Shown one piece after another: positions 2,990 through 48,525 of a stretch of DNA of 64,000 bases. Position 1 is the first letter of the stretch, and each line of letters opens with the position of its first letter. The position numbers and the translations under genes were made by a program. This stretch comes from Macrostomum lignano. Its lineage: Eukaryota. The DNA is taken from the NCBI GenBank assembly GCA_002269645.1, contig NIVC01000386.1, positions 124,001-188,000 of the forward strand, read 5' to 3'. Under the pieces are notes generated by a model, which did no database searches, was not told where the DNA came from, and saw only the letters and a program-made list of their open reading frames with translations.

Positions 2990-5015
2990 ATGGCCGAAGC
3001 CGAAAACGCCAAGGAGATCGAACCCGCGACCGCCGCCGATGGGCCGCAGCAGCAGCAGGCGGGAGGCATCAGGCAGCGGATCCGCAGCCTGCTGAAGAGG
3101 AAGGACCGGCAGAAGCAGCAGAAGGAGCGGCCGGATGACGCGGTGAAGCTGGGCTGCGGCGGCCTGTTCCGCCGGAAGAAGCGGGCGGAGGCGGGCGATC
3201 AGGAGTCGCAGAAGCCGGCGGAGAAGCCGAAAAAAAGCGGCAAAGGCGGCGAAGTGAAGGTAGGCGAACTGGTTGCAGTTTACTCGAACTCATTTCCTGC
3301 TGCATGAAGTTTTACTTTTTATGATCATATCGGAGCTTTGGCCAGCATGCATTTGCTCTGCTTGCTGATTGTACGAAGGGGCATCAGGGATACCAGGGAC
3401 ATCAGGGACATCAGAGACATCAGAGACGTCAGGGACATCAGGGACAGAAACATTAGGGACATCAGGGACATCAGGGACATCAGAAACATCAGGGACATCA
3501 GGGACATTAGAAACATCAGGGACATCAGGGACATCAGGGACATCAGGGACATCAGGGACATCAGGGTCATCAGGGTCAACAATGGCCGTAGAACTCAAAT
3601 TTGCTTCTAGGAAGAGGAGAAGCAGGAGGTGGAGCTGCAGCCGCAGCCGCAGCAGCCAGATGCGGCCTCAGCGTCAGCGGCAGAGCCGGAGACTTCAGCG
3701 CTGGAGCAGCCGGCATCAAAAGCGCCGGCGAGACCCGAGAATCCGCCAAGGCCGCTGGTTGAACTGGCGGCGAAGTCTGCGCCACAGCCGGACGAGGATG
3801 TCAATGAGAAGACGGAAGAGAACGCAGCGGAAGAGAACGCAGCGGAAGAGAACGCAGCGGAAGAGAACGCAGCGGAAGAGAACGCAGCGAAAGAGAACGC
3901 AGCGGAGGAAGACAAGACGACAGTTCAGAACGGCCACGCTTTGGAGAGCGAGCCAGAGTCAGAAAATCAGCGACACGAAGAGGCGGAGCGGCAGTTCCAG
4001 CAGGCCTCGGTGGACATGGCGGACGTGACGCCGAAGCCGGGAGTGACAGTAAGGCCTTGAGGCAAAAGTGGCGATTGCTGCCGCAACGGGTCTTAGCTGA
4101 TCAATAGTTTGCTGACCGCAGTATTTCATAGCTACGAGTGTTTAATGCTTGCTTTTTTACTCGCCTCGGCTGCTGCTGTTTACTCAACTGGTGAAGGCCG
4201 CTTTTGTCGATAAGACCAATTATTGTTGACGGTTTATAGATATCAGCTGCGAAGTCAGGCTGGAGGCAGGCTGGGGGCAGGCTGGGGGCAGGCTGGGGGC
4301 AGGCTGGGGGGCAGGGCGGAGGGCAGGCTGGGGTCAGGCTGGAGCAAAGCTGGAGACAGGCTGGGGGCAGGCTGGGGACAGGCTGGGGTCAGGCTGGGGG
4401 CAGGCTGGGGGCAGGCTGAAGTCAGGTTGAGCGAATGCTGATACATGTATGAAACGCCAAGCAGTTCTACTCATAGTAGTGAAAGGAAGATATGTAGATA
4501 AATCTTGTAAAAGCGTTGCCGTATATACATACAGGGGGATAAAAAGACTGCTGCTTACATTATTTCTGAGAGCGCAAACATTTGGCCATTTCTGCTTTCA
4601 GATTGAGCAGGGCCCGCACACGGAGATATGGTCCAGCATCATTAACAAGAGCTTCATCGGTACCGGAGCCTTCAAGCGAGCCGCGGTCTGCAGCCTGGAG
4701 TCTGGAGCCGTGCTGGCCTGCAACCCCGCTGACTTCACGCCCACCGTGCAGCAGGTGGCCGTCCTGCGCGAGAACTTCGACTGCCGCTCCGGCCTGTCCG
4801 CGGCCGGCTTCGGGCTGGCCGACACGGTGTACAGCCTGCTGGACGAGGCCGGCACCAAGGACATTCTGTGCGGCAGCGACGAATCGCGCGGCCAGACGCT
4901 GCTGGTCTGCAAAACGAAGACGGCGCTGCTGGCGGCCGCGTGCCAGGGCGCCCCGGACCGCGCCGCCGACATGCTGGGCGACATGCGGCAGCACTTCATC
5001 TCGCAGGGGATGTGA
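2990..5015 (+). CDS. N-terminally extended profilin-domain protein, paralog 1 (3 exons, ~373 aa)
   Basis: Exons 2990-3259 (donor AAG|GTAGGC), 3611-4048 (acceptor TTCTAG|, donor ACA|GTAAGG) and 4602-5015 (acceptor TTTCAG|). All junctions are phase 0 and in frame. The last exon has profilin hallmarks: WSSII..SFIGTG.F..AAV.SL..G...A, F...SGL...GF.L..T.Y, LLV.KTKTALL, and the C-terminal helix DMRQHFISQGM. Confidence 0.8.
3385..3580. repeat. 9-bp tandem repeat (GACATCAGG) in intron 1
   Basis: About 20 visible copies between donor 3260 and acceptor 3610. Confidence 0.9.
4255..4425. repeat. 11-bp G-rich tandem repeat (GGCAGGCTGGG) in intron 2
   Basis: Visible degenerate tandem copies. Confidence 0.85.
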
Positions 5016-5928
5016 GGGCTGCCCGACTGCAAGCGCCGAGTCTCAGTAAGACGGAGCAGCACTTCAAATCTATGGAAATATTTTTAGGCATTGGTGAGGA
5101 GGATTTCCAAGTTATTTTAGCACTAGAACTCACTTCCTGAGCATTCGAAAGTGAATTTTAAAAGTACAAATTTCAGTTTATGCTTAATCAAAAGTTTTCA
5201 AACGGTTAAAACTTAAACTGCAACTATTGCAGTACCGGAAATCTTCCAATCCGATTGTAACATTAAAACAAATGTAGTTCTGCTGATTTGAAGTGTTCAT
5301 CTGTCCCTGGACCCCGACTGGTTGACAGACAACATTGTGGCTTCCCATTGACGTGTCGAATGCATGATTATTAAATTTTCATCTGCATTATTAGCCTAGC
5401 AATGAAGCCGCGCTCTGCTGCGAATGCCAGTGGCGGATTTGGTTTTTACTGTTATCGTTTTATTTACGTAATAAATTTTTAACATTTTGTGTTTCTTTTG
5501 GCTCCAATTCAAACTGTCAGCAGATTTTTATGATTAGAGTAATCAGCTGATGATTTTGCTTTCCTAAAAAAACTAGGAATATTCGACTCTAGGATCCTAC
5601 TTTTTGATTATTATATATCAGTACTCGATGGCTTATCAAATAAAAATGTACTTTTCCTGTCTCAAGCTTCCGGTATTTTATTATCATTAAAGCGGCCCAG
5701 CTCTTCAGTCAGCTCTGGTGACTGACTCGTCAGATATTGACTTTTCTGCTGTAAATGCGCGCCCAATGACTGATTGGCAGTTACCCATATCATTAACATA
5801 ATGAGTTGCACCTGCGATTTTCAGCCAGATGCTATAAATAAAATTGATATTTCAGCTGAAAAATGTCAATTTTTCAAAATGCAATTTCAGCTGAAAAATA
5901 CTCAACCCTTTGTTGTAATTTTCGTGAA

Positions 5929-7509
5929 ATTCTCACTATGAGCAGACCAGCTATTCTCACTATGAGCAGACCAGCTATTCTCACTATGAGCAGACCAGCT
6001 ATTCTCACTATGAGCAGACCAGCTATTCTCACTATGAGCAGACCAGCTATTCTCACTATGAGCAGATCAGCTATTCTCACTATGAGCAGACCAGCTATTC
6101 TCACTATGAGCAGATCAGCTATTCTCACTATGAGCAGATCAGCTATTCTCACTATGAGCAGATCAGCTATTCTCACTATGAGCAGACCAGCTATTCTCAC
6201 TATGAGCAGACCAGCTATTCTCACTATGAGCAGACCAGCTATTCTCACTATGAGCAGATCAGCTATTCTCACTATGAGCAGATCAGCTATTCTCACTATG
6301 AGCAGATCAGCTATTCTCACTATGAGCAGACCAGCTATTCTTTACTATGAGCAGACCAGCTATTCTCACTATGAGCAGATCAGCTATTCTCACTATGAGC
6401 AGACCAGCTATTCTCACTATGAGCAGACCAGCTATTCTCACTATGAGCAGATCAGCTATTCTCACTATGAGCAGACCAGCTATTCTCACTATGAGCAGAC
6501 CAGCTATTCTCACTATGAGCAGATCAGCTATTCTCACTGTGAGCAGACCAGCTATTCTCACTATGAGCAGACCAGCTATTCTCACTATGAGCAGATCAGC
6601 TATTCTTTACTATGAGCAGACCAGCTATTCTCACTATGAGCAGATCAGCTATTCTCACTATGAGCAGATCAGCTATTCTCACTATGAGCAGACCAGCTAT
6701 TCTCACTATGAGCAGACCAGCTATTCTCACTATGAGCAGATCAGCTATTCTCACTATGAGCAGACCAGCTATTCTCACTATGAGCAGATCAGCTATTCTC
6801 ACTATGAGCAGACCAGCTATTCTCACTATGAGCAGATCAGCTATTCTCACTATGAGCAGACCAGCTATTCTTTACTATGAGCAGACCAGCTATTCTCACT
6901 ATGAGCAGATCAGCTATTCTCACTATGAGCAGATCAGCTATTCTCACTATGAGCAGACCAGCTATTCTCACTATGAGCAGACCAGCTATTCTCACTATGA
7001 GCAGATCAGCTATTCTCACTATGAGCAGACCAGCTATTCTCACTATGAGCAGACCAGCTATTCTCACTATGAGCAGACCAGCTATTCTTTACTATGAGCA
7101 GACCAGCTATTCTCACTATGAGCAGATCAGCTATTCTCACTATGAGCAGACCAGCTATTCTCACTATGAGCAGACCAGCTATTCTCACTATGAGCAGATC
7201 AGCTATTCTCACTATGAGCAGACCAGCTATTCTCACTATGAGCAGACCAGCTATTCTCACTATGAGCAGACCAGCTATTCTCACTATGAGCAGATCAGCT
7301 ATTCTCACTATGAGCAGATCAGCTATTCTCACTATGAGCAGATCAGCTATTCTCACTATGAGCAGATCAGCTATTCTCACTATGAGCAGATCAGCTATTC
7401 TCACTATGAGCAGACCAGCTATTCTCACTATGAGCAGACCAGCTATTCTCACTATGAGCAGATCAGCTATTCTCACTATGAGCAGACCAGCTATTCTCCC
7501 TATGAGCAG
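5929..7509. repeat. 24-bp minisatellite, ~65 copies
   Basis: Unit ATTCTCACTATGAGCAGA(C/T)CAGCT, with occasional 25-bp units (ATTCTTTACT). Confidence 0.98.
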
Positions 7510-7909
7510 GCTATAACTAATTAATTATTTAAGACGCAAATTGTGTCATGCCACGCCACATGCCCCTACGGGCCCATTGACCCGCAAGAATGATTGCGTC
7601 ACGACTGCGCTGACATATTGGAAGGCATGAGTCACATGAGCAGGTTAGTATCAGCAGGTGACGCAATACCTTTGATAAGAATGCCTTGATAACGCAGCTC
7701 ATGGTGACCACACAGCCCAGACACCACGTGCTCGGCTTTCTATCAAGAGTTTTTGGCACGGTGGATTCACGTGGCGACTCGCTTATTAGCAAGCTCAAGT
7801 TTATAAGGCCCCCTCTGGGCCGCAAGTCTGCAGCAAGACAGCAGTCAGCTGGTTAACCAGACAGAATCAATCAATGCTCAGCGGCTTCAGCTTCAGCTTC
7901 GATTTCACA

Positions 7910-9591
7910 ATGACTGAGCAGGGCCGCTACAGCAACGGCGAGGTCGAACCTGAGACCGTCGGCGACGATCCGCCGCAGCAGCAGAGGAAGCAGGCAGCTG
8001 GAGGCGGCCTGAGGCAACGAATCCGCGACCTGCTGCTGAGGCGGAACCGCGACCGCAGGCGCAGGCAGCAGAAGGAGTGGCGGCCCGCTGACGACTCGGT
8101 GAAGCTGCTGGGCTTCTGCGGGCTGCTGCACCGGACGAAGCGCAGGGAGTCTGGAGCCGGCTGCATCAAGAAGCCGTCAGAGGTAGGTTGGAAGCCATTT
8201 TTCCTGATTCGTCAACTTTTTGGCAACTTGCCAAGGCCAGCAAATTCATTAAAGCGATGCTCGCCCCTTGCTTCTAGGAGCAGCAGTTGGAAGATCGGCA
8301 GCCGAGTGATTCGGCCACCAAGCCGGAGCCGTCATCGGAGCAGCCGGCGGCGTTGACAGCGCCAGCCGAACTGGAGAGTCCACCGCGGCCTCTGCTGGAG
8401 TTGGCGAAAAAAACACGGGAAGAGAAGACGCCGAAAGAGAAGACGCCGAAAGAGAAGACGCCGGAAGAAAAGACGCCGGAAGAAAAGACACCGGACAAGA
8501 AGACGCCAGAAGAGAAGACACCGGACAAGAAGACACCGGAAGAGAAGACACCGGACAAGAAGACGCCGGAAGAAAAGACACCGGACAAGAAGACGCCGGA
8601 AAAGAAGACACCGGACAAGAAGACGCCGGAAGAGAAGACACCGGACAAGAAGACGCCGGAAGAAAAGACACCGGACAAGAAGACGCCGGAAAAGAAGACA
8701 CCGGACAAGAAGAGGCCGGAAGAAAAGACACGGGAAGAGAAGACACCAGACGAAAAGACACCAGACGAAAAGACACCGGACGAGAAGACACCGGACGAGA
8801 AGACACCGGACGAGAAGACAACGAAAGAAGCGACGCCCGAAAAGAAGACACCGGAAGCGAAGAAGACAGCGAAAAAGAAGGCAACGCGAAGAGCGGCTCC
8901 AAAAAGAAGACACCGAAGAAGAAGACAATTGAAAAGAAGACACCAGAAAATTCGATAACAGAAGAGAACACCTCGGAAGACGCTGCAAGCATACCAGCCA
9001 AGCCAGAAGTAAGTGTAATACCCAAATGGAAACAGTTATTTACTTCTCAAGACTCAGGGCCCGCTAAATTCGAAACTCAAAATCATTCTTAATGACGACA
9101 GCATTGAATTTCTCTGAATAAACTCTGGCACGCCAGAACTAAACAAAAACGATGACTTTCACCCGCGTCACCCGCAGATGAACCTGGGCCCACACGCGGA
9201 GATGTGGTCCAGCATCATTAACAAGAGCTTCATCGGTACCGGAGCCTTCAAGCGAGCCGCGGTCTGCAGCCTGGAGTCTGGAGCCGTGCTGGCCTGCAAC
9301 CCCGCTGACTTCACGCCCACCGTGCAGCAGGTGGCCGTCCTGCGCGAGAACTTCGACTGCCGCTCCGGCCTGTCCGCGGCCGGCTTCGGGCTGGCCGACA
9401 CGGTGTACAGCCTGCTGGACGAGGCCGGCACCAAGGACATTCTGTGCGGCAGCGACGAATCGCGCGGCCAGACGCTGCTGGTTTGCAAAACGAAGACGGC
9501 GCTGCTGGCGGCCGCGTGCCAGGGCGCCCCGGACCGCGCCGCCGACATGCTGAGCGACATGCGGCAGCACTTCATCTCGCAGGGGATTTGA
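7910..9591 (+). CDS. N-terminally extended profilin-domain protein, paralog 2 (3 exons; 1-nt frameshift near 8880)
   Basis: Exons 7910-8182 (GAG|GTAGGT), 8278-9008 (TTCTAG|, GAA|GTAAGT) and 9178-9591 (CCGCAG|). Exon 2 is an EKTP(D/E) 15-bp repeat. One added base near 8880 continues the KKTP-type frame to the phase-0 donor at 9009. The profilin exon is near-identical to that of paralog 1. Confidence 0.72.
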
Positions 9592-10051
9592 GGGCTGTGC
9601 GGCAGATGTGGAAAAGAATTGATAAGACCATTCAGCTTATTTTACGGTATTCGTTCGCATAAGTATCATTGCTGTTTTAATTCTCAGCTTTTATAAAGTA
9701 AAAGTAATGCGCTGTCTCATTTTATGAACGCATTAAAAATAATGTTGCTACTCGTAATTTCAAAGGAGCTTTGCAAGGGTGCTGCTCAAATAAACGCATT
9801 CAACGTCAGGTGAGTCTACTTCAAAACTCATGACAAAGTATATTTGAATATCCAGTGCGCACTTGGCCAAACTTTTCAAATTCCAGCTGTGTAGTTCCTT
9901 GACTGTGCTTTAATTAGCCAATGAAACAAACGTCTTATCTATAGAATTTTTACCGAAAGGACATGTCTATGTTAAATGCATCTGTGTGGCGTTCGAATAA
10001 AGCCAGACAGAGTGCATTTTACAAAATCTCATTTGTCCCAATGCTGCTCAG

Positions 10052-12535
10052 ATGGGGCTCATGAGGCCAATACCTGGCTCCGCTGTCTGCTGGCTGTTGG
10101 CTACCCTGGTATCCGGAGCAGCTGAAGCCGGGAGAACTCCCGTGGAACACCCTGGACTCTTCATCCTGCCCCTGTTTCGGCCGCCGAGTCCGCAGGAGAG
10201 GCGGGCGGTCCGTCATCCGGTAATCTGGAGCGCCCACGAGGCTGGCAGTCGCAGCCGGGCGATGCCGCCAGGCGGCCCAGCGGCCCTGGCCTGCCTACTC
10301 GATGGCCTCGGGACGAACGACACGGCAGCGCTGGAGTCGCTCGAGTGGACGCTGGTGAGCGACGCCGGCCAGGTGACGCGACACAGCCTCCACGGCCAGG
10401 ATGGAGACTTCCGGTTTCACCTGAGCGGAGAGCTGTTCACAGGCCGCTACACCGCTCTGTCAGGGTCCACTCTGATTGTCTCCTCCTTGCCTGCGCGGCT
10501 GCGAGTCGGCTGCCAGTACCGAGCTGCTGGTCTGAACGCCACCGTCAGGTCCGACTGGCTGCTCCTGTGGGATGAGCGGGCGGAGGTCAAGAGATGGCGG
10601 AATGCCAACCTGCACTGCGATCGCACCGTCTACAAGACTCCGGACGGTCCCGACCAGACTGCGCTCGCCGTTGCCTACAGCTGCCTCGGGCTCGGGGACA
10701 CCCGGCTGCTGGAGACAGCAGTTGTCGCGATGTACGCAAAAGCCGGTAAAGCCGGAACCTGTTCGACCGAAGCCGCTTCTCGAGAGAGCAAGTTCAAGAT
10801 TTTTTCGAACTCATCCGACTCGGGACCGAGCTTCTTTGGAGTCGCATTTGGGGGGCGCATTCGATTCGGTTGGACGCTGGGAGCGGGGGGCAGCGAGGCC
10901 AACGCGAGCGCTCAGCCAGGCCAACTCGAGCAGACGGAGACCTGCCTCTGCCTCATGCTGGATGCCACTCTGCCAAGCTCACGGACTGTCCAGCTTCACT
11001 ATTCTATCCCTCAGGCAGCAGCCAGTGCCTCTGTGACCGTGCCTCCGCAGCAGCCGGTGCTCATTGTGCCAATCACTCTCGGAGGCCTTCCCACAGAGGT
11101 GCTGCTGGACGAGCTGCCTGAACGAACAGCGCCTTGTCTGCTCCTGTGCCTGCGGCCAGACACTGCTGCTTGCTGGCACCGATGGGCGGGTCCGGGCCGG
11201 GCCCCCGCTCCCCGAAAACCCCCGGACTCGCAGCCGCTGTCGCTCCAGCTGCGTCACTCAGACAAGCAGGCGGCTGGCATTTGGACCTGCAGCGCCCAGC
11301 TTTACCCAGCTGCGTCTGTGTCATACGCCGTCTCTTCAAAGCCGCGTCCTGCACTGCGCGACCCTCGACTGCCTCGCCGAACTGCGGTGCTGCAATCGCA
11401 GAGCGTCATCTTGAACTGCTCACTGCTCGGCCTGGCTCAGAACGCCAGCGCCGAGTTCGACATCTACGCTTCGATTGGTGCAGCAAACTTCAGTCTGCAG
11501 AAGTTTAAGCGTGTCTTGCCAGACGGTGTCATGGAGCTTAGCGTTAACGTGTCAGCAATCTCGTCAGCCCCAACAGGCGCCATGCTTCTCCTGCGATGTC
11601 GGGGTGCGGAGCTCATTGGGGGGCGCTCGATCGTTGACTATGCGACAGTGAACATTCTGCCCCAACCGGAGGTGAAGTCGCTGGATGCTTGTCCCGACTC
11701 TGACGTGCCTTGCCAGGCGGACTGCCAGTCCCCTTTCGAGTCGCAGCTTCGCTCCCTCGGAGTGTCCATCTCCTACTTGTTCTACATCTACAGCGAGTCC
11801 GGCCAGCTAGAGAGGACTTTTTCCAGCTCAGGCGTGCTGCCTGATGTCAGAAGCTCCGTGGCTGGAAGCAATATTAAAGGCGTTTTGAAGCCGATTTGCC
11901 AGCAGTTTTTTCACCATATCAGCTCTCCGCCAGGCCAAGCCTCAATTGGTTCAATCGGTGGCGCCTCAAAGCAGCTGGATGACATGCTGAAGTTCAGTCC
12001 GGAACTTTGGGATCGGCCGCTATATGGGATGCCGCAGTCTGATGATCCGCAGGGGAACTCCAGGAAGAATTCCACGGCTGAGAACAGGGCCGGCGTGTCT
12101 TCCATGATGTACGTCCTCATCAGCATCTTCGGGGTCGGCGGCCTGGCCATCTTTATGGCGGTCGGTATCGGCGTGAACGAGTGGAAGAAGGACGTTCGGA
12201 ACGCCGACCCGACGCTGATCTCCGACGATCCCGCGCCGACCGACGGACAGAAGAGCGCCACCACGGCCTCCTCCGGGGGCAAGCAGGCGGGCAGCAAGGT
12301 GGGACAAGGCAAGGCGCCACTCGGAGGGATGGGGGCCGCCCGTCAGGTGGATCAGAAAGCGGCTCAAGGAGGGATGGGGGCTGCTCGACAGGCGGATCAG
12401 AAAGTGACTCAAGGAGGGATGGGGGCCGCTCAGCAGGCGGATCAGAAAGCGGCTCAAGGAGGGATGGGGGCCGCTCAGCAGGCGGATCAGAATGCGGCTC
12501 CAGCGGCCAAGAATGCAACAGGTAAAACACCATAG
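10052..12535 (+). CDS. Type I membrane protein with probable Ig-like ectodomain, 827 aa, single ORF
   Basis: Hydrophobic N-terminal signal (AVCWLLATLVSGAAEA). Ig-like signatures include C..LEW..STLIVSSL..C and AAGIWTC. There are several N-x-S/T sites and a TM helix (MMYVLISIFGVGGLAIFMAVGIGV). The cytoplasmic tail has 4 x 15-aa GGMGAAQQADQKAAQ repeats. The Ig assignment is by eye. Confidence 0.7.
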   Translation: MGLMRPIPGSAVCWLLATLVSGAAEAGRTPVEHPGLFILPLFRPPSPQERRAVRHPVIWSAHEAGSRSRAMPPGGPAALACLLDGLGTNDTAALESLEWTLVSDAGQVTRHSLHGQDGDFRFHLSGELFTGRYTALSGSTLIVSSLPARLRVGCQYRAAGLNATVRSDWLLLWDERAEVKRWRNANLHCDRTVYKTPDGPDQTALAVAYSCLGLGDTRLLETAVVAMYAKAGKAGTCSTEAASRESKFKIFSNSSDSGPSFFGVAFGGRIRFGWTLGAGGSEANASAQPGQLEQTETCLCLMLDATLPSSRTVQLHYSIPQAAASASVTVPPQQPVLIVPITLGGLPTEVLLDELPERTAPCLLLCLRPDTAACWHRWAGPGRAPAPRKPPDSQPLSLQLRHSDKQAAGIWTCSAQLYPAASVSYAVSSKPRPALRDPRLPRRTAVLQSQSVILNCSLLGLAQNASAEFDIYASIGAANFSLQKFKRVLPDGVMELSVNVSAISSAPTGAMLLLRCRGAELIGGRSIVDYATVNILPQPEVKSLDACPDSDVPCQADCQSPFESQLRSLGVSISYLFYIYSESGQLERTFSSSGVLPDVRSSVAGSNIKGVLKPICQQFFHHISSPPGQASIGSIGGASKQLDDMLKFSPELWDRPLYGMPQSDDPQGNSRKNSTAENRAGVSSMMYVLISIFGVGGLAIFMAVGIGVNEWKKDVRNADPTLISDDPAPTDGQKSATTASSGGKQAGSKVGQGKAPLGGMGAARQVDQKAAQGGMGAARQADQKVTQGGMGAAQQADQKAAQGGMGAAQQADQNAAPAAKNATGKTP

Positions 12536-40350: not shown

Positions 40351-42957
40351 ATGGCGAAGCAATTGACTGTCCGTTATGTCTTCTATCTGATGCTTCTCGT
40401 TTGCTGCGGCACTGAAGCTGCCTGCGAACAGTGCTCTGCCGTGTTTGAGCTGCGGACACGCGACTGCCCGACCGCTCCTTTTGCGACTGCTCCTGTTGCG
40501 GCTCAAAGTGAGTCGGAGTGCGTGCTGCGCTGCACTCTCAGCCCCGAGTGCCGGCTGTCCGTGTACCTGACCGACAGTGCTACATGCTACAGCCTGCCGG
40601 CAGCGGCTCTGACAGCCGATGGACAATCGACTGCCTTGACGACGCAATCCATGGAACCACCGACGACGGCTACTACTACAACACCGAGTATTACGACTAC
40701 CACACCGACTACGACAACTAACACACCGAGTACGACGACTACCACACCGACTACTACAACGACACCGACTACTACGACTACCACACCTACAACTACGACG
40801 ACTACACCGACTACAACGACTACCACACCGACTACAACGACTACCACACCGACTACAACGACTACCACACCGACTACTACAACGACTACCACACCGACTA
40901 CTACGACGACGACTACACCGACTACAACGACTACCACACCTACAACTACGACGACTACACCGACTACAACGACTACCACACCGACTACAACGACTACCAC
41001 ACCGACTACTACAACGACGACTACACCGACTACGAAGACGACTACACCGACTACGACGACTACCACACCGACTACTACAACGACACCGTCTACAACGACT
41101 ACCACACCTACAACTACGACGACTACACCGACTACAACGACTACCACACCGACTACTACAACAACACCGACTACTACGACTACCACACCTACAACTACGA
41201 CGACTACACCGACTACAACGACTACCACACCGACTACAACGACTACTACACCGACTACTACGACGACGACTACACCGACTACAACGACTACCACACCGAC
41301 TACTACGACTACCACACCTACAACTACGACGACTACACCGACTACAACGACTACAACACCTACAACTACGACTACCACACCGACTACAACGACTACAACG
41401 ACTACCACACCTACAACTACGACTACCACACCTACAACTACGACGACTACACCGACTACAACGACTACAACACCTACAACTACGACTACCACACCGACTA
41501 CAACGACTACCACACCGACTACAACGACTACCACACCGACTACTACGACGACGACTACACCGACTACAACGACTACTACACCGACTACACCGACTACAAC
41601 GACTACCACACCTACAACTACGACTACCACACCTACAACTACGACTACCACACCGACTACAACGACTACAACACCTACAACTACGACTACCACACCGACT
41701 ACAACGACTACCACACCGACTACAACGACTAAAACACTTACAACTACGACTACCACACCGACTACAACGACTACCACACCGACTACAACGACTACCACAC
41801 CGACTACTACTACCACACCGACTACTACGACGACGACTACACCGACTACAACGACTACCACACCGACTACTCCAACGACACCGACTACTACGACTACTAC
41901 ACCGACTACTACGACTACTACACCGACTACTACGACTACTACACCTACAACTACGACGACTACACCGACTACTACTACGACTACACCGACTACTACGACT
42001 ACTACACCGACTACTACTACGACGACTACACCGACTACAACGACTACCACACCGACTACTACAACAACACCGACTACTACAACAACACCGACTACTACGA
42101 CTACCACACCTACACCTACGACGACTACGCCGACTACAACGACTACCACACCGACTACAACGACTACCACACCGACTACAACGATTACCACACCGACTAC
42201 TACTACCACACCAACTACTACGACGACTACCACACCGACTACTACAACAACACCGACTACTACGACTACCACACCTACAACTACGACGACTACGCCGACT
42301 ACAACGACTACCACACCGACTACAACGACTACCACACCGACTACAACGACTACCACACCGACTACTATGACTACCACACCGACTACTACGACGACGACTG
42401 CACCGACTACTACGACTATCACACCTACAACTACGACTACCACACCGACTACAACGACTACCACACCGACTACTACGACTACCACACCGACTACAACGAC
42501 TACCACACCGACTGCTACTACCACACCAACTACTACGACGACTACCACACCGACTACAACGACTACCACACCGACTACAACGACTACCACACCGACTACT
42601 ACGACTACCACACCGACTACTACAACGACTAACACACCGACTACAACGACTACCACACCGACTACAACGACTACCACACCGACTACAACGACTACCACAC
42701 CGACTACTATGACTACCACACCGACTACAACGACTACCACACCGACTACAACGACTACCACACCGACTACTATGACTACCACACCGACTACTACGACGAC
42801 GACTGCACCGACTACGACGATTACCACACCGACTACCACTGATAAGACTACACTGTTTATGACAGCGCCTTCGTCTCCTATGATGACGTCATTTGTAACT
42901 CATTTGCCTAACAACTGCGGCTCGGGAATGGTTGTCCGCTGGAAGCTGGGCCCCTAG
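40351..42957 (+). CDS. Secreted mucin-like protein: PAN module with a ~750-aa Thr/Pro insert (868 aa)
   Basis: Signal peptide (YVFYLMLLVCCGTEA); PAN core ECVLRCTLSPECRLSVYLTDSATCYSLP as in 34589; PTTTTTT repeats with varied codons; ends NCGSGMVVRWKLGP. Confidence 0.8.
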   Translation: MAKQLTVRYVFYLMLLVCCGTEAACEQCSAVFELRTRDCPTAPFATAPVAAQSESECVLRCTLSPECRLSVYLTDSATCYSLPAAALTADGQSTALTTQSMEPPTTATTTTPSITTTTPTTTTNTPSTTTTTPTTTTTPTTTTTTPTTTTTTPTTTTTTPTTTTTTPTTTTTTPTTTTTTTPTTTTTTTPTTTTTTPTTTTTTPTTTTTTPTTTTTTPTTTTTTTPTTKTTTPTTTTTTPTTTTTPSTTTTTPTTTTTTPTTTTTTPTTTTTPTTTTTTPTTTTTTPTTTTTTPTTTTTTPTTTTTTTPTTTTTTPTTTTTTPTTTTTTPTTTTTTPTTTTTTPTTTTTTTTTPTTTTTTPTTTTTTPTTTTTTPTTTTTTPTTTTTTPTTTTTTPTTTTTTTPTTTTTTPTTPTTTTTTPTTTTTTPTTTTTTPTTTTTTPTTTTTTPTTTTTTPTTTTKTLTTTTTTPTTTTTTPTTTTTTPTTTTTPTTTTTTTPTTTTTTPTTPTTPTTTTTTPTTTTTTPTTTTTTPTTTTTTPTTTTTTPTTTTTTPTTTTTTTPTTTTTTPTTTTTPTTTTTPTTTTTTPTPTTTTPTTTTTTPTTTTTTPTTTITTPTTTTTPTTTTTTTPTTTTTPTTTTTTPTTTTTTPTTTTTTPTTTTTTPTTTTTTPTTMTTTPTTTTTTAPTTTTITPTTTTTTPTTTTTTPTTTTTTPTTTTTTPTATTTPTTTTTTTPTTTTTTPTTTTTTPTTTTTTPTTTTTNTPTTTTTTPTTTTTTPTTTTTTPTTMTTTPTTTTTTPTTTTTTPTTMTTTPTTTTTTAPTTTITTPTTTDKTTLFMTAPSSPMMTSFVTHLPNNCGSGMVVRWKLGP

Positions 42958-43221
42958 TGAGCAAGGCAATTTTCTGCAGCCAGGACTCGATGACGAATCA
43001 AGCGGCTGAATGGCTTGATGGGAAACTGCAAAAGTGATTCATTTTGTTTTAATCTTGATACAATACGCTCGTAATATATTTATTCTGATGAAAAACTTCT
43101 CACAAGTAGTATATCCCTAATTTTCTAATGCTCTTACAGAAGATGATAAAAATATACACTTTTAATTGTCGGCTTTACGGTTTTTCCCGACTCGTTAACT
43201 GCACGCGAATGAAATCATAAG

Positions 43222-44530
43222 CTGTGTGCATGAGGTGTGTGTGCATGAGGTGTGTGTGCATGAGCTTTGTGTGCATGAGCTGTGTGCATGAGCTGTGTGT
43301 GCATGAAGTGTGTGTGCATGAGGTGTGTGTGCATGAGCTGTGTGTGCATGAGGTGTGTGTGCATGAGCTGTGTGTGCATGAGCTGTGTGTGCATGAGGTG
43401 TGTGTGCATGAGCTGTGTGTGCATTAGGTGTGTGCATGAGCTTTGTGTGCATGAGGTGTGTGTGCATGAGGTGTGTGTGCATGAGCTTTGTGTGCATGAG
43501 CTGTGTGTGCATGAGCTGTGTGTGCATGAGGTGTGTGTGCATGAGCTGTGTGTGCATTAGGTGTGTGCATGAGGTGTGTGTGCAAAGGTGTGTGTGCATG
43601 AGTTGTGTGTGTGCATGAGCTGTGTGCATGAGGTGTGTGTGCATGAGCTGTGTGTGCATGAGGTGTGTGTGCATGAGGTGTGTGTGCATGAGGTGTGTGT
43701 GCATGAGCTTTGTGTGCATGAGGTGTGTGTGCATGAGGTGTGTGTGCATGAGCTTTGTGTGCATGAGGTGTGTGTGCATGAGGTGTGTGTGCATGAGCTT
43801 TGTGTGCATGAGCTGTGTGTGCATGAGGTGTGTGTGCATGAGCTGTGTGTGCATGAGGTGTGTGTGCATGAGCTGTGTGTGCATTAGGTGTGTGCATGAG
43901 GTGTGTGCAAAGGTGTGTGTGCATGAGTTTTGTGTGTGCATGAGCTGTGTGCATGAGCTGTGTGTGCATGAGCTGTGTGTGCATGAGGTGTGTGCATGAA
44001 GTGTGTGTGCATGAGGTGTGTGTGCATGAGGTGTGTGTGCATGAGCTGTGTGTGCATGAGCTGTGTGTGCATGAGTTGTGTGTGTGCATGAGGTGTGTGT
44101 GCATGAGGTGTGTGTGCATGAGGTGTGTGTGCATGAGGTGTGTGTGCATGAGGTGTGTGTGCATGAGGTGTGTGCATGAGCTGTGTATGCATGAGGTGTG
44201 TGTGCATGAGGTGTGCGCATGAGCTGTGTGTGCATGAGGTGTGTGCATGAGCTGTGTATGCATGAGGTGTGTGTGCATGAGGTGTGTGTGCATGAGGTGT
44301 GTGTGCATGAGGTGTGTGTGCATGAGGTGTGTGCATGAGCTGTGTATGCATGAGGTGTGTGTGCATGAGGTGTGTGTGCATGAGGTGTGTGCATGAGCTG
44401 TGTGTGCATGAGGTGTGTGTGCATGAGCTGTGTGTGCATGAGGTGTGTGCATGAGGTGTGTGTGCATGAGCTGTGTGTGCATGAGCTGTGTGTGCATGAG
44501 GTGTGTGTGCATGAGGTGTGTGTGCATGAG
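43222..44530. repeat. 13-15-bp satellite (CATGAG(G/C)TGTGTGTG)n, copy 1
   Basis: Continuous array; generates spurious His-rich and Cys-rich ORFs. Confidence 0.97.
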
Positions 44531-46943
44531 CGAGTGCCGGCTGTCCGTGTACCTGACCGACAGTGCTACATGCTACAGCCTGCCGGCAGCGGCTCTGACA
44601 GCCGATGGACAATCGACTGCCTTGACGACGCAATCCATGGAACCACCGACGACGGCTACTACTACAACACCGAGTATTACGACTACCACACCGACTACGA
44701 CAACTAACACACCGAGTACGACGACTACCACACCGACTACTACAACGACACCGACTACTACGACTACCACACCTACAACTACGACGACTACACCGACTAC
44801 AACGACTACCACACCGACTACAACGACTACCACACCGACTACAACGACTACCACACCGACTACTACAACGACTACCACACCGACTACTACGACGACGACT
44901 ACACCGACTACAACGACTACCACACCTACAACTACGACGACTACACCGACTACAACGACTACCACACCGACTACAACGACTACCACACCGACTACTACTA
45001 CGACGACTACACCGACTACGAAGACGACTACACCGACTACGACGACTACCACACCGACTACTACAACGACACCGTCTACAACGACTACCACACCTACAAC
45101 TACGACGACTACACCGACTACAACGACTACCACACCGACTACTACAACAACACCGACTACTACGACTACCACACCTACAACTACGACGACTACACCGACT
45201 ACAACGACTACCACACCGACTACAACGACTACTACACCGACTACTACGACGACGACTACACCGACTACAACGACTACCACACCGACTACTACGACTACCA
45301 CACCTACAACTACGACGACTACACCGACTACAACGACTACAACACCTACAACTACGACTACCACACCGACTACAACGACTACAACGACTACCACACCTAC
45401 AACTACGACTACCACACCTACAACTACGACGACTACACCGACTACAACGACTACAACACCTACAACTACGACTACCACACCGACTACAACGACTACCACA
45501 CCGACTACTACGACTACCACACCGACTACTACGACGACGACTACACCGACTACAACGACTACTACACCGACTACACCGACTACAACGACTACCACACCTA
45601 CAACTACGACTACCACACCTACAACTACGACTACCACACCGACTACAACGACTACAACACCTACAACTACGACTACCACACCGACTACAACGACTACCAC
45701 ACCGACTACAACGACTAAAACACTTACAACTACGACTACCACACCGACTACAACGACTACCACACCGACTACAACGACTACCACACCGACTACTACTACC
45801 ACACCGACTACTACGACGACGACTACACCGACTACAACGACTACCACACCGACTACTCCAACGACACCGACTACTACGACTACTACACCGACTACTACGA
45901 CTACTACACCGACTACTACGACTACTACACCTACAACTACGACGACTACACCGACTACTACTACGACTACACCGACTACTACGACTACTACACCGACTAC
46001 TACTACGACGACTACACCGACTACAACGACTACCACACCGACTACTACAACAACACCGACTACTACAACAACACCGACTACTACGACTACCACACCTACA
46101 CCTACGACGACTACGCCGACTACAACGACTACCACACCGACTACAACGACTACCACACCGACTACAACGATTACCACACCGACTACTACTACCACACCAA
46201 CTACTACGACGACTACCACACCGACTACTACAACAACACCGACTACTACGACTACCACACCTACAACTACGACGACTACGCCGACTACAACGACTACCAC
46301 ACCGACTACAACGACTACCACACCGACTACAACGACTACCACACCGACTACTATGACTACCACACCGACTACTACGACGACGACTGCACCGACTACTACG
46401 ACTATCACACCTACAACTACGACTACCACACCGACTACAACGACTACCACACCGACTACAACGACTACCACACCGACTACAACGACTACCACACCGACTA
46501 CTACTACCACACCAACTACTACGACGACTACCACACCGACTACAACGACTACCACACCGACTACAACGACTACCACACCGACTACTACGACTACCACACC
46601 GACTACTACAACGACTAACACACCGACTACAACGACTACCACACCGACTACAACGACTACCACACCGACTACAACGACTACCACACCGACTACTACGACT
46701 ACCACACCGACTACAACGACTACCACACCGACTACAACGACTACCACACCGACTACTATGACTACCACACCGACTACTACGACGACGACTGCACCGACTA
46801 CGACGATTACCACACCGACTACCACTGATAAGACTACACTGTTTATGACAGCGCCTTCGTCTCCTATGATGACGTCATTTGTAACTCATTTGCCTAACAA
46901 CTGCGGCTCGGGAATGGTTGTCCGCTGGAAGCTGGGCCCCTAG
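44531..46943 (+). pseudogene. 5'-truncated duplicate of the PAN-mucin gene
   Basis: Matches 40545-42957 at an offset of 3986 bp. It starts mid-PAN (ECRLSVY) directly after the satellite and lacks the ATG and signal peptide. Confidence 0.75.
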
Positions 46944-47207
46944 TGAGCAAGGCAATTTTCTGCAGCCAGGACTCGATGACGAATCAAGCGGCTGAATGGC
47001 TTGATGGGAAACTGCAAAAGTGATTCATTTTGTTTTAATCTTGATACAATACGCTCGTAATATATTTATTCTGATGAAAAACTTCTCACAAGTAGTATAT
47101 CCCTAATTTTCTAATGCTCTTACAGAAGATGATAAAAATATACACTTTTAATTGTCGGCTTTACGGTTTTTCCCGACTCGTTAACTGCACGCGAATGAAA
47201 TCATAAG

Positions 47208-48525
47208 CTGTGTGCATGAGGTGTGTGTGCATGAGGTGTGTGTGCATGAGCTTTGTGTGCATGAGCTGTGTGCATGAGCTGTGTGTGCATGAAGTGTGTG
47301 TGCATGAGGTGTGTGTGCATGAGCTGTGTGTGCATGAGGTGTGTGTGCATGAGCTGTGTGTGCATGAGCTGTGTGTGCATGAGGTGTGTGTGCATGAGCT
47401 GTGTGTGCATTAGGTGTGTGCATGAGCTTTGTGTGCATGAGGTGTGTGTGCATGAGGTGTGTGTGCATGAGCTTTGTGTGCATGAGCTGTGTGTGCATGA
47501 GCTGTGTGTGCATGAGGTGTGTGTGCATGAGGTGTGTGTGCATGAGCTTTGTGTGCATGAGGTGTGTGTGCAAAGGTGTGTGTGCATGAGTTGTGTGTGT
47601 GCATGAGCTGTGTGCATGAGGTGTGTGTGCATGAGCTGTGTGTGCATGAGGTGTGTGTGCATGAGGTGTGTGTGCATGAGGTGTGTGTGCATGAGCTTTG
47701 TGTGCATGAGGTGTGTGTGCATGAGGTGTGTGTGCATGAGCTTTGTGTGCATGAGGTGTGTGTGCATGAGGTGTGTGTGCATGAGCTTTGTGTGCATGAG
47801 CTGTGTGTGCATGAGGTGTGTGTGCATGAGCTGTGTGTGCATGAGGTGTGTGTGCATGAGCTGTGTGTGCATTAGGTGTGTGCATGAGGTGTGTGCAAAG
47901 GTGTGTGTGCATGAGTTTTGTGTGTGCATGAGCTGTGTGCATGAGCTGTGTGTGCATGAGCTGTGTGTGCATGAGGTGTGTGCATGAAGTGTGTGTGCAT
48001 GAGGTGTGTGTGCATGAGGTGTGTGTGCATGAGCTGTGTGTGCATGAGCTGTGTGTGCATGAGTTGTGTGTGTGCATGAGGTGTGTGTGCATGAGGTGTG
48101 TGTGCATGAGGTGTGTGTGCATGAGGTGTGTGTGCATGAGGTGTGTGTGCATGAGGTGTGTGCATGAGCTGTGTATGCATGAGGTGTGTGTGCATGAGGT
48201 GTGTGCATGAGCTGTGTGTGCATGAGGTGTGTGCATGAGCTGTGTATGCATGAGGTGTGTGTGCATGAGGTGTGTGTGCATGAGGTGTGTGTGCATGAGG
48301 TGTGTGTGCATGAGGTGTGTGCATGAGCTGTGTATGCATGAGGTGTGTGTGCATGAGGTGTGTGTGCATGAGGTGTGTGCATGAGCTGTGTGTGCATGAG
48401 GTGTGTGTGCATGAGCTGTGTGTGCATGAGGTGTGTGCATGAGGTGTGTGTGCATGAGCTGTGTGTGCATGAGCTGTGTGTGCATGAGGTGTGTGTGCAT
48501 GAGGTGTGTGTGCATGAGCTGTGTG
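47208..48525. repeat. 13-15-bp satellite, copy 2
   Basis: Duplicate of 43222-44530 with small internal rearrangements. Confidence 0.97.

Follow-up and report, generated by a model that had tools for sequence, protein, structure and literature searches.

Profilins are among the most uniform of actin regulators and are almost always free-standing proteins of 125-140 amino acids (aa). Artificial N-terminal tags disturb the profilin poly-proline site. Here we describe a tandem pair of paralogous genes from the flatworm Macrostomum lignano, gene 1 and gene 2, in each of which three coding exons specify in turn a basic head, a low-complexity repeat segment and a profilin fold. The pair lies within a 64,000-nucleotide (nt) stretch of contig NIVC01000386.1 (positions 124,001 to 188,000), which we call the window and by whose first letter all positions are counted.

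The canonical 'lower-eukaryote type' profilins of Pfam family PF00235, such as those of Acanthamoeba (1ACF/2ACG) and S. pombe (3D9Y), agree with the flatworm domain in fold and in the order of secondary-structure elements. The flatworm domain retains the first Trp and the GTG loop, as well as the His/Tyr of its C-terminal helix. A profile of the subfamily to which it belongs aligns end to end with amoeba profilin in hhalign (E 1.8e-14). Canonical profilins are single domains, whereas the flatworm proteins add an N-terminal extension of 236-300 aa; identity between the two is 22-26%, and the signature ACNP.DFTP.V.Q is specific to the subfamily. Mammalian profilin-4 (PFN4) provides a precedent for re-use of the profilin fold outside classical actin and poly-proline work, as it has lost the aromatic poly-proline site and binds phosphoinositides only, not poly-proline or actin (PMC2694148). 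However, PFN4 is a 129-aa single domain without an extension, and it partly lacks W3 and H133, both of which the flatworm domain retains. The N-terminal extension of archaeal profilin has been proposed to modulate phosphoinositide binding (PMC8410842), and the profilins of Heimdallarchaeota and Thorarchaeota resemble the flatworm proteins in having an extension before the fold, but theirs is far shorter, with no repeat spacer, no separate conserved basic head and no evolutionary link. Among flatworms, the Fasciola hepatica profilin FhProfilin binds poly-L-proline and sequesters actin but does not bind phosphoinositides (PMC7727368), and it is an ordinary protein of ~14 kDa without head or spacer.

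A profilin fold at the end of a three-exon gene

Gene 1 is already in public databases, as a hypothetical protein. Its joined exons form a 1122-nt open frame of 373 aa with GT/AG at every intron border (Table 1), and the product matches GenBank PAA84161.1 (BOX15_Mlig008644g1, 'hypothetical protein') from end to end at 100% identity; UniProt names that entry 'Profilin' automatically. The GenBank annotation of M. lignano was produced by genome-guided RNA-seq assembly (StringTie/TACO plus a de novo transcriptome), with transcript ends set by spliced-leader (SL) and poly(A) reads (PMC5730564). Because the model is RNA-seq-derived, the gene 1 junctions 3259/3611 and 4048/4602 rest on transcript data. 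The three-exon, phase-0 layout that a preliminary description had drawn from the sequence alone is, for gene 1, exact to the base, and in this model the profilin exon is spliced onto the upstream exons. Product size departs from that of canonical profilins, at 373 aa for gene 1 and 430 aa for gene 2 as encoded at two paralogous loci, L003 on NIVC01000639.1 and L004 on NIVC01001626.1; the domain occupies the last 137 aa. The label 'giant' first given to these profilins overstates the case, since ~200 of the 373-430 residues are predicted to be disordered.

Against Pfam Profilin (gathering cutoff 25 bits, profile length 127), the whole gene 1 protein scored 45.9 bits and its exon 3 by itself 49.4 bits, the match covering profile positions 3-127, and the L004 version of gene 2 scored 46.8 bits. 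Compared by sequence with the solved amoeba profilins in the PDB, exon 3 gave an E value of 3e-5 alone and 1e-13 as a family profile. An AlphaFold2 model of the exon 3 domain, built from an eight-sequence alignment, had a predicted local distance difference test score (pLDDT) of 84.9, a predicted template modelling score (pTM) of 0.82 and the element order H-E-E-H-E-E-E-E-E-H (H, helix; E, strand), as in profilin. The top Foldseek match was Acanthamoeba profilin 1acf (template modelling score, TM, 0.81/0.89; root-mean-square deviation 1.9 Å), and the top 48 PDB matches, which include 2acg and 3d9y, were all profilins or entries with a profilin chain or a fused profilin. By profile match and predicted structure, the last exon of both genes is a complete, divergent profilin fold, as had been proposed.

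Poly-proline-site residues were taken from the list in PMC2694148 and mapped via HMMER/hhalign alignments to Acanthamoeba profilin. The aromatic platform (W3, Y6, W31, H/Y133 and Y/F139, human numbering) retains two of its five positions, W3 (W10 of exon 3) and H133. Y6 is replaced by Ile in both genes, and this Ile is invariant in a ten-sequence subfamily alignment; W31 is replaced by Leu in both, and Y139 by Met in gene 1 and Ile in gene 2. The loss of aromatic positions noticed earlier by eye was right in these alignments, three of five being replaced, and classical poly-proline binding is, on these substitutions, probably weak or absent.

To place the domain, 1.84 billion representative sequences were searched with HMMER, which returned 16 proteins at E<1e-3. 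One of them, P0008 (1322 aa), is a bacterial-type repeat protein and was rejected as a family member; a homology search with a family profile found 6 proteins only and added little. Among the members is a third M. lignano paralogue group from outside the window, P0006/P0020/P0021 (Mlig010505, Mlig026365 and Mlig019530), with models of 413-415 aa, a C-terminal profilin, a head of the form ...GGFRFFWKKKK...GCGGLF[KR]RKTR and a PPPPPP run in the linker; genes 1 and 2 instead share PPRPL[VL]EL in exon 2. Should any poly-proline binding survive, the PPPPPP run of the Mlig010505 group could serve as a ligand motif, for the protein itself or for a partner. Further members come from Schistosoma haematobium (A0A095AFX3) and from marine metagenomes and metatranscriptomes, one of them on a Tara Oceans scaffold. 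All nine of the subfamily proteins that were scanned (9/9) exceeded the Pfam Profilin cutoff and had no other domain. Most subfamily members have a basic N-terminal extension, and in several the profilin is C-terminal to it. In P0011 and P0010, which are genomic-looking Logan contigs, the open reading frame runs from intron-like sequence (…FSFLQ/IDQTGNNELW; here and below a slash within letters marks the junction) into the domain. The sequences suggest that a phase-0 intron directly before the profilin domain is conserved beyond Macrostomum.

Within the family, phmmer scores were 32-133 bits, versus ≤33 bits to canonical profilins. Orthology to PFN4 was considered and rejected at lead level: a PFN4 sequence scored 2-18 bits against the subfamily versus 55-59 bits against amoeba and yeast profilins, and the subfamily profile matched it partially at E 2e-8 versus full-length to amoeba profilin at 1.8e-14. 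Because within-family scores exceed those to canonical profilins and PFN4 is nearer to the amoeba and yeast proteins, we treat the gene 1 and gene 2 proteins as part of a small, very divergent profilin subfamily that forms a separate clade and is not orthologous to PFN4.

Table 1. Features of the tandem profilin-fold gene pair in the M. lignano window
Feature	Position	Strand	Description
Tandem paralogue pair, NIVC01000386.1	gene 1 2990-5015, gene 2 7874-9591	+	2.9 kb between
Gene 1 exon 1	2990..3259	+	270 nt, phase 0; 90-aa basic head, motif GGIRQRIRSLLKRK...RPDDAVKLGCGGLFRRKKR
Gene 1 intron 1	3260..3610	+	phase 0; contains 9-nt minisatellite 3377-3575
Gene 1 exon 2	3611..4048	+	438 nt; 146-aa acidic predicted-disordered spacer, phase-0/phase-0 cassette exon
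Gene 1 coding minisatellite	3813..3906	+	15-nt unit GAAGAGAACGCAGCG (EENAA), 6.3 copies
Gene 1 intron 2	4049..4601	+	phase 0; contains 11-nt minisatellite 4256-4418
Gene 1 exon 3	4602..5015	+	414 nt; 137-aa complete (predicted) profilin-fold domain and stop codon
Gene-conversion tract, gene 1 side	4632..5012	+	exon 3 positions 31-411
Candidate fusion donor AT/GTGAGG	5011..5012	+	overlaps gene 1 last codon and stop; paired with acceptor CTCAG/C 7881/7882 in A0A1I8IN42
Intergenic 24-nt satellite ATTCTCACTATGAGCAGACCAGCT	5929..7509		65.7 copies, fills gene 1-gene 2 gap
Gene 2 exon 1	7874..8182	+	basic head; ATG 7874, or in-frame ATG 7910
Gene 2 intron 1	8183..8277	+	GT..AG
Gene 2 exon 2	8278..9008	+	K/E/T/P repeat spacer, 731 nt (3n+2), out of frame here
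Gene 2 coding minisatellite	8413..8948	+	15-nt unit GAAGAGAAGACACCG (EEKTP/DKKTP), 35.6 copies
Frameshift site	8866..8886	+	12-nt insertion AAGAAGACAGCG, then one base missing after 8885
Premature TAA	8956..8958	+	frame entering exon 2; 50 nt before exon 2 donor, ahead of profilin exon
Gene 2 intron 2	9009..9177	+	GT..AG
Gene 2 exon 3	9178..9591	+	137-aa profilin-fold domain, 97% identical to gene 1's
Gene-conversion tract, gene 2 side	9208..9588	+	exon 3 positions 31-411

The repeat exon, gene conversion and the state of gene 2

The tandem pair is kept at three syntenic M. lignano loci (the window, L003 and L004), and the downstream neighbours annotated at L004 are those of the window locus. 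The spacer of gene 1 is acidic (net charge -27, isoelectric point (pI) 4.1) and that of gene 2 is a K/E/T/P polyampholyte with a net charge of ~0 to -5 and 16-26 Thr-Pro dipeptides, so that 'acidic repeat spacer', proposed for both genes, fits gene 1 and not gene 2. In a manual comparison of rotated consensus units, the 15-nt units of the two genes are 12/15 identical, which points to a common origin of the repeats in both spacers; the low-complexity segments of exon 2 would then have grown from one ancestral 15-nt coding minisatellite. Copy numbers, computed with Tandem Repeats Finder, are 2.3 for the gene 1 coding repeat and 19.9 for that of gene 2, at both L003 and L004.

As a cassette, exon 2 can be omitted without a change of frame. 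P0003, the 227-aa GenBank model at L004, consists of exon 1 and exon 3, and exon 2 is intact at that locus. P0004, an uninterrupted 934-nt cDNA-like Logan contig from run SRR28338164 whose source we presume to be a related macrostomid, encodes a 243-aa relative without spacer; its profilin domain is 80% identical, and its junction GGTVK/LEQGPH is equivalent to the exon 1/exon 3 join. Both P0003 and P0004 support splicing of head to profilin and argue against a fixed spacer length.

These observations bear on the earlier proposal of a spacer of variable length that holds the profilin at a distance. Length does vary between copies, but a calibrated distance sits badly with an exon 2 that is skipped in P0003 and absent from P0004. 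We therefore regard as improbable a tether in which the spacer sets a functional head-to-profilin distance and its length is under selection. The frame has stayed open through 6 and through 20-36 repeats of one 15-nt-derived unit, and non-repeat motifs of exon 2 are kept (PPRPL[VL]ELA[AK]K in genes 1 and 2; AERQ..FQ..SVDM in gene 1 and P0006), as such a tether would have it. However, loci with 97-99% identity in the remaining sequence differ in copy number, 2.3 against 6.3 and 19.9 against 35.6; where the gene 2 spacer begins, 5 changes are non-synonymous and 1 is synonymous; and the repeat is open in all three frames in a genome that is rich in minisatellites anyway, with ~30 others in the window. 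Rather than a measured spacer, the repeat exon would be a flexible linker whose presence is tolerated, whose length expands freely and whose splicing is optional.

The introns and the intergenic gap also contain arrays. The 9-nt minisatellite of gene 1 intron 1 has 22 copies in the window versus 52-55 at the paralogous loci, and the 11-nt array of intron 2 has 15 versus 23-25. The intergenic 24-nt satellite has 19.7-23.7 copies at the paralogous loci (L003 13348-13917; L004 13245-13717), and the intronic arrays thus vary between loci in the direction opposite to it.

The profilin exons behave differently from their surroundings. Between exon 3 positions 31 and 411, the two genes match at 378/381 nt in the window, 378/380 at L003 and 381/381 at L004. 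Identity is 23/30 in the first 30 nt of the exon and ~45% in the flanking intron and 3' sequence. At four sites the two genes agree within a locus and differ between the window and L003/L004, a pattern that requires gene conversion of the ~380-nt tract after the loci separated. Judged by this pattern of sites, gene conversion keeps the profilin exons 99-100% identical within each locus while their surroundings have diverged.

The claim that both genes share one phase-0 architecture holds for gene 1 and, in exon layout and GT/AG borders, for gene 2; it does not hold for the gene 2 frame in the window, where the 731-nt exon 2 runs into TAA at 8956-8958. In the alignment, the frameshift site reads GGCAAC/GCG in the window versus GGCAACAGCG in the paralogues, and the 12-nt insertion alone is in-frame. 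At L003 and L004, exon 2 of gene 2 is 570 nt long and open, giving a 430-aa head-spacer-profilin protein. Either the frameshift marks a genuine truncating allele, one of three copies in a neopolyploid genome, or it arose as an indel in assembly. At L003 ~12426 (gene 1 exon 3 position 405), another deletion, of 1 nt within a G run, shifts the last codons and gives the aberrant C-terminus ...ISQGCEGCPTASAESQ of GenBank PAA79352.1 (P0002); for it, too, the choice lies between an indel of the assembly and a variant allele. Since this deletion explains the odd C-terminus of P0002, indels of such a kind occur in the assembly.

Could gene 2 be dead in the window, and perhaps a decaying duplicate generally, with a profilin exon kept fresh only by conversion from gene 1? 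We consider this doubtful. The frameshift and premature stop result from a net change of 11 nt, which is no simple 1-nt homopolymer slip, a GenBank model is absent at all three loci, gene conversion is able to preserve the exon of a pseudogene, and a neopolyploid genome with three copies tolerates the loss of one. Yet the 430-aa frame is open at two loci across a frame-fragile repeat, every splice site is intact, and exon 1 is 99% identical at L003 and L004, the head differing between loci by 3 synonymous changes and 1 non-synonymous change. The missing base itself may be an error, given the 1-nt indel in gene 1 exon 3 of L003 in this PacBio-based assembly. Transcripts that overlapped repeat annotations were dropped from the GenBank submission (PMC5730564); this alone can explain the missing model and may be why gene 2 is absent from GenBank. 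A separate gene 2 entry was not found in the protein database.

The same exon raises a second question, namely whether the profilin is also or mainly made alone, as a product of ~137 aa, through SL trans-splicing at the exon 3 acceptor or from an internal start. The M. lignano spliced leader is 35 nt long and ends in ATG, and ~30% of the genes are trans-spliced (PMC8629364). Both exon 3 acceptors are in phase 0, so that an SL-derived AUG would be in frame; gene 2 exon 3 opens with ATG immediately past the acceptor at 3/3 loci, and this would be the sole route to a gene 2 profilin from the window copy. Against this, exon 3 follows upstream exons in all of the RNA-seq-derived models P0001, P0002 and P0003 and in contig P0004, and the head shows conservation between paralogues as well as between species. 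Near the start of gene 1 exon 3 there is no ATG, and a 137-aa product is not on record in the protein database. A profilin made on its own is, on balance, rather unlikely. At the same acceptor, L003 (15411-15419) and L004 (15211-15219) carry a tandem form, cAG/CCGCAG/, before gene 2 exon 3; its upstream AG would add Pro-Gln, as in an older model, and in the window (9169-9177) the upstream acceptor position reads caC, leaving the downstream acceptor only.

Two older UniProt models, both tucked away in 90% clusters, bring the genes together: A0A1I8IN42 (P0034, 904 aa) runs from gene 1 into gene 2, and in A0A1I8IIT4 (273 aa) exon 1 of gene 1 is followed by exon 3 of gene 2. On their face, the genes would be co-transcribed and co-spliced into an ~800-aa double profilin or into a chimera of gene 1 head and gene 2 profilin. 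The donor 5011/5012 and the acceptor 7881/7882 are both present in the window and preserve the frame, as do the sites used by the 273-aa model, all introns are in phase 0, and ~7% of M. lignano transcriptional units are multi-gene precursors (PMC5730564). The newer annotation, cut by poly(A) and SL data, nevertheless ends gene 1 at its own stop (PMC5730564). Tandem paralogues are commonly fused by gene predictors, the pyrimidine tract of acceptor 7881/7882 is poor, and the older assembly is fragmented, with near-identical exon 3 copies prone to collapse, so that we hold fusion to be very improbable.

The basic head and a possible localisation role

The exon 1 heads are 90-103 aa long and basic (gene 1, net +9, pI 10.0; gene 2, net +8, pI 10.3). 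The gene 1 head is 42-45% identical to that of gene 2 and 64% identical to that of P0004, and the three share GG[IL]RQRIR.LL, RP.DD.VKL and G.L.[FH]R.[KT]KR within the overall motif GG[IL]RQRIR.LL.[RK]...RP.DD.VKL.G.(C)G.L.[FH]R.[KT]KR. Charge peaks at net +6 to +7 per 15 residues, adjoining L/F/I residues. In a full-length AlphaFold model of gene 1, pLDDT is <50 for residues 1-26, 38-205 and 221-231, two helices (27-43 and 208-223) are weak, and the domain, beginning near residue 240, is predicted with confidence. Pfam searches with the heads and spacers gave sub-threshold compositional matches only (HC2, 29 bits against a cutoff of 40; Extensin, 27 against 105).

The effector core of MARCKS reads KKRFSFKK. 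The M. lignano head likewise has basic clusters interspersed with Phe/Leu, and the likeness is closest in the distant members P0033 and P0032, which combine an MGNKSSS start, of the N-myristoylation type, with GLKKRFSFRKHK (GLKKR[FL]S[FI]RK). The M. lignano heads differ in having no N-terminal Gly, and the resemblance is one of motif and composition, homology being undetectable.

The reading we favour, with a little more than even confidence, is that of tandem head/optional linker/remodelled-profilin genes whose head localises the product. The profilin domain would be the working part, with a ligand groove remodelled by the change of Y6 to Ile and the loss of W31 and Y139, and the conserved basic and hydrophobic head would be a localisation module. 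By analogy with the MARCKS effector, the most likely targets of the head are acidic membranes or phosphoinositides, or else calmodulin; nuclear import is the main alternative. Because an amphipathic control failed and no myristoylation signal was seen, the targeting idea rests on the conservation of the motif and on analogy with distant relatives.

Several observations weigh against this reading. Between loci, the two heads combined show 6 synonymous versus 3 non-synonymous differences, which is suggestive of constraint on the head, but with 2-7 between-locus differences per exon these are too few for a firm ratio of non-synonymous to synonymous rates (dN/dS). The head helix 27-43 is of low confidence (pLDDT ~50), and an amphipathic-helix head was rejected as a candidate, since its maximum hydrophobic moment was reached by 226/500 shuffles for gene 1 and 375/500 for gene 2. 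The M. lignano heads lack the N-terminal Gly for myristoylation: gene 1 starts with MAEAEN and gene 2 with MLSGFS or MTEQGR, so that the Met-Gly-x-x-x-Ser/Thr signal is not matched. A long bipartite nuclear localisation pattern can be read in the head as well. On the side of the domain, actin-contact residues are not reliably mappable at 20-26% identity. The PFN1 contacts considered were F59, R74, R88, K90, H119, K125 and Y128; the subfamily profile fails to align with human PFN1 in hhalign, and an ungapped by-eye mapping of the C-terminus suggests Ala for H119 and Asp for K125, positions at which amoeba profilin also differs. Finally, gene 2 has no GenBank model at the window, L003 or L004, and no gene 2-specific transcript evidence was found, gene 2 being present only inside the older fused or chimeric UniProt models.

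The nuclear pattern deserves separate mention, as canonical profilin shuttles through the nucleus and all M. lignano paralogues have two basic clusters in the head (KRKDRQKQQK...RRKKR in gene 1, RRNRDRRRRQQK...RTKRR in gene 2). If the head were a nuclear localisation signal, the protein would be a nuclear profilin-like factor and not a membrane-associated one. The clusters are, however, ~23 residues apart, beyond classical bipartite spacing; a conserved Cys-Gly-Gly-Leu-Phe adjoins the second cluster; and the distant members begin in the N-myristoylation manner and contain basic stretches rich in F/L, features typical of membrane binding. We consider a nuclear role quite unlikely.

The membrane-directed form of the favoured reading can be extended, though tentatively, to a scheme that we ourselves think unlikely to hold in full. 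The proteins would form part of a subfamily, so far undescribed, of profilin-fold proteins with an anchor, present in flatworms and in certain marine eukaryotes; a MARCKS-like head would pin a remodelled-groove profilin to membranes. The head would be myristoylated in some lineages and polybasic with Cys in Macrostomum. In Macrostomum, too, tether length would be set from case to case by alternative splicing of a cassette exon built of an expanding coding minisatellite, and gene conversion would keep the effector domains of the tandem paralogues identical as their heads and tethers diverge.

Surroundings of the pair and significance

Upstream of gene 1 lie a 63-nt array at 770-1342 (9 copies), a 21-nt array at 1822-2362 (26 copies) and CT/poly-C tracts at 2670-2760. 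TATA-like elements upstream of each ATG were considered as promoters and dropped, as the 5' untranslated region of the partial model P0002 spans the gene 1 element. Downstream, on the + strand at 10034-12535, is a neighbour with one long open reading frame, annotated in GenBank with 833 aa and ending in QGGMGAA[RQ]QADQK repeats; a Pfam scan of the 833-aa protein gave no match. A homologue of 846 aa is also downstream of the pair at L004, which indicates synteny. Across the 64-kb window, ~30 distinct minisatellite arrays score >300, which fits the reported 15% of simple and tandem repeats in the genome. The segments 40670-44530 and 44656-48525 are an apparent tandem segmental duplication with an offset of 3986 bp. 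In each copy, a 21-nt array has 103.0 copies, a score of 2454 and the same Tandem Repeats Finder statistics, followed by a 15-nt array of 88.8 copies in one and 89.3 in the other.

A literature search for 'Macrostomum' with 'profilin' listed tapeworm, sponge and snail studies, and none of the matches listed was on Macrostomum profilins. A main-text search for Mlig008644, Mlig019338 and Mlig020979 found none, and six M. lignano locus tags had no match in the supplementary tables of PMC7336406 and PMC5730564 or in those of PMC5816591, of which the largest table was covered in part. The germline role suggested earlier drew no support from these files, nor did expression in any other tissue. The head-linker-profilin design is real and is undescribed in the literature searched.

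If the products were ordinary cytosolic profilins with an inert tail, the finding would shrink to an annotation note. Nonetheless, given the uniformity of profilins and the effect of N-terminal tags on them, a natural fusion of a basic head and a disordered linker to the N-terminus, together with the replacement of three of the five groove aromatics, deserves attention. There are two options: re-use of the fold for a new ligand at one fixed place in the cell, or local anchoring of a profilin as a workable means of steering actin assembly. The question is testable, since RNA interference and transgenesis exist in M. lignano. The locus is also a compact natural case of concerted evolution of one exon, expansion of a coding minisatellite and a symmetry of exon phases that keeps any combination of exons in frame.

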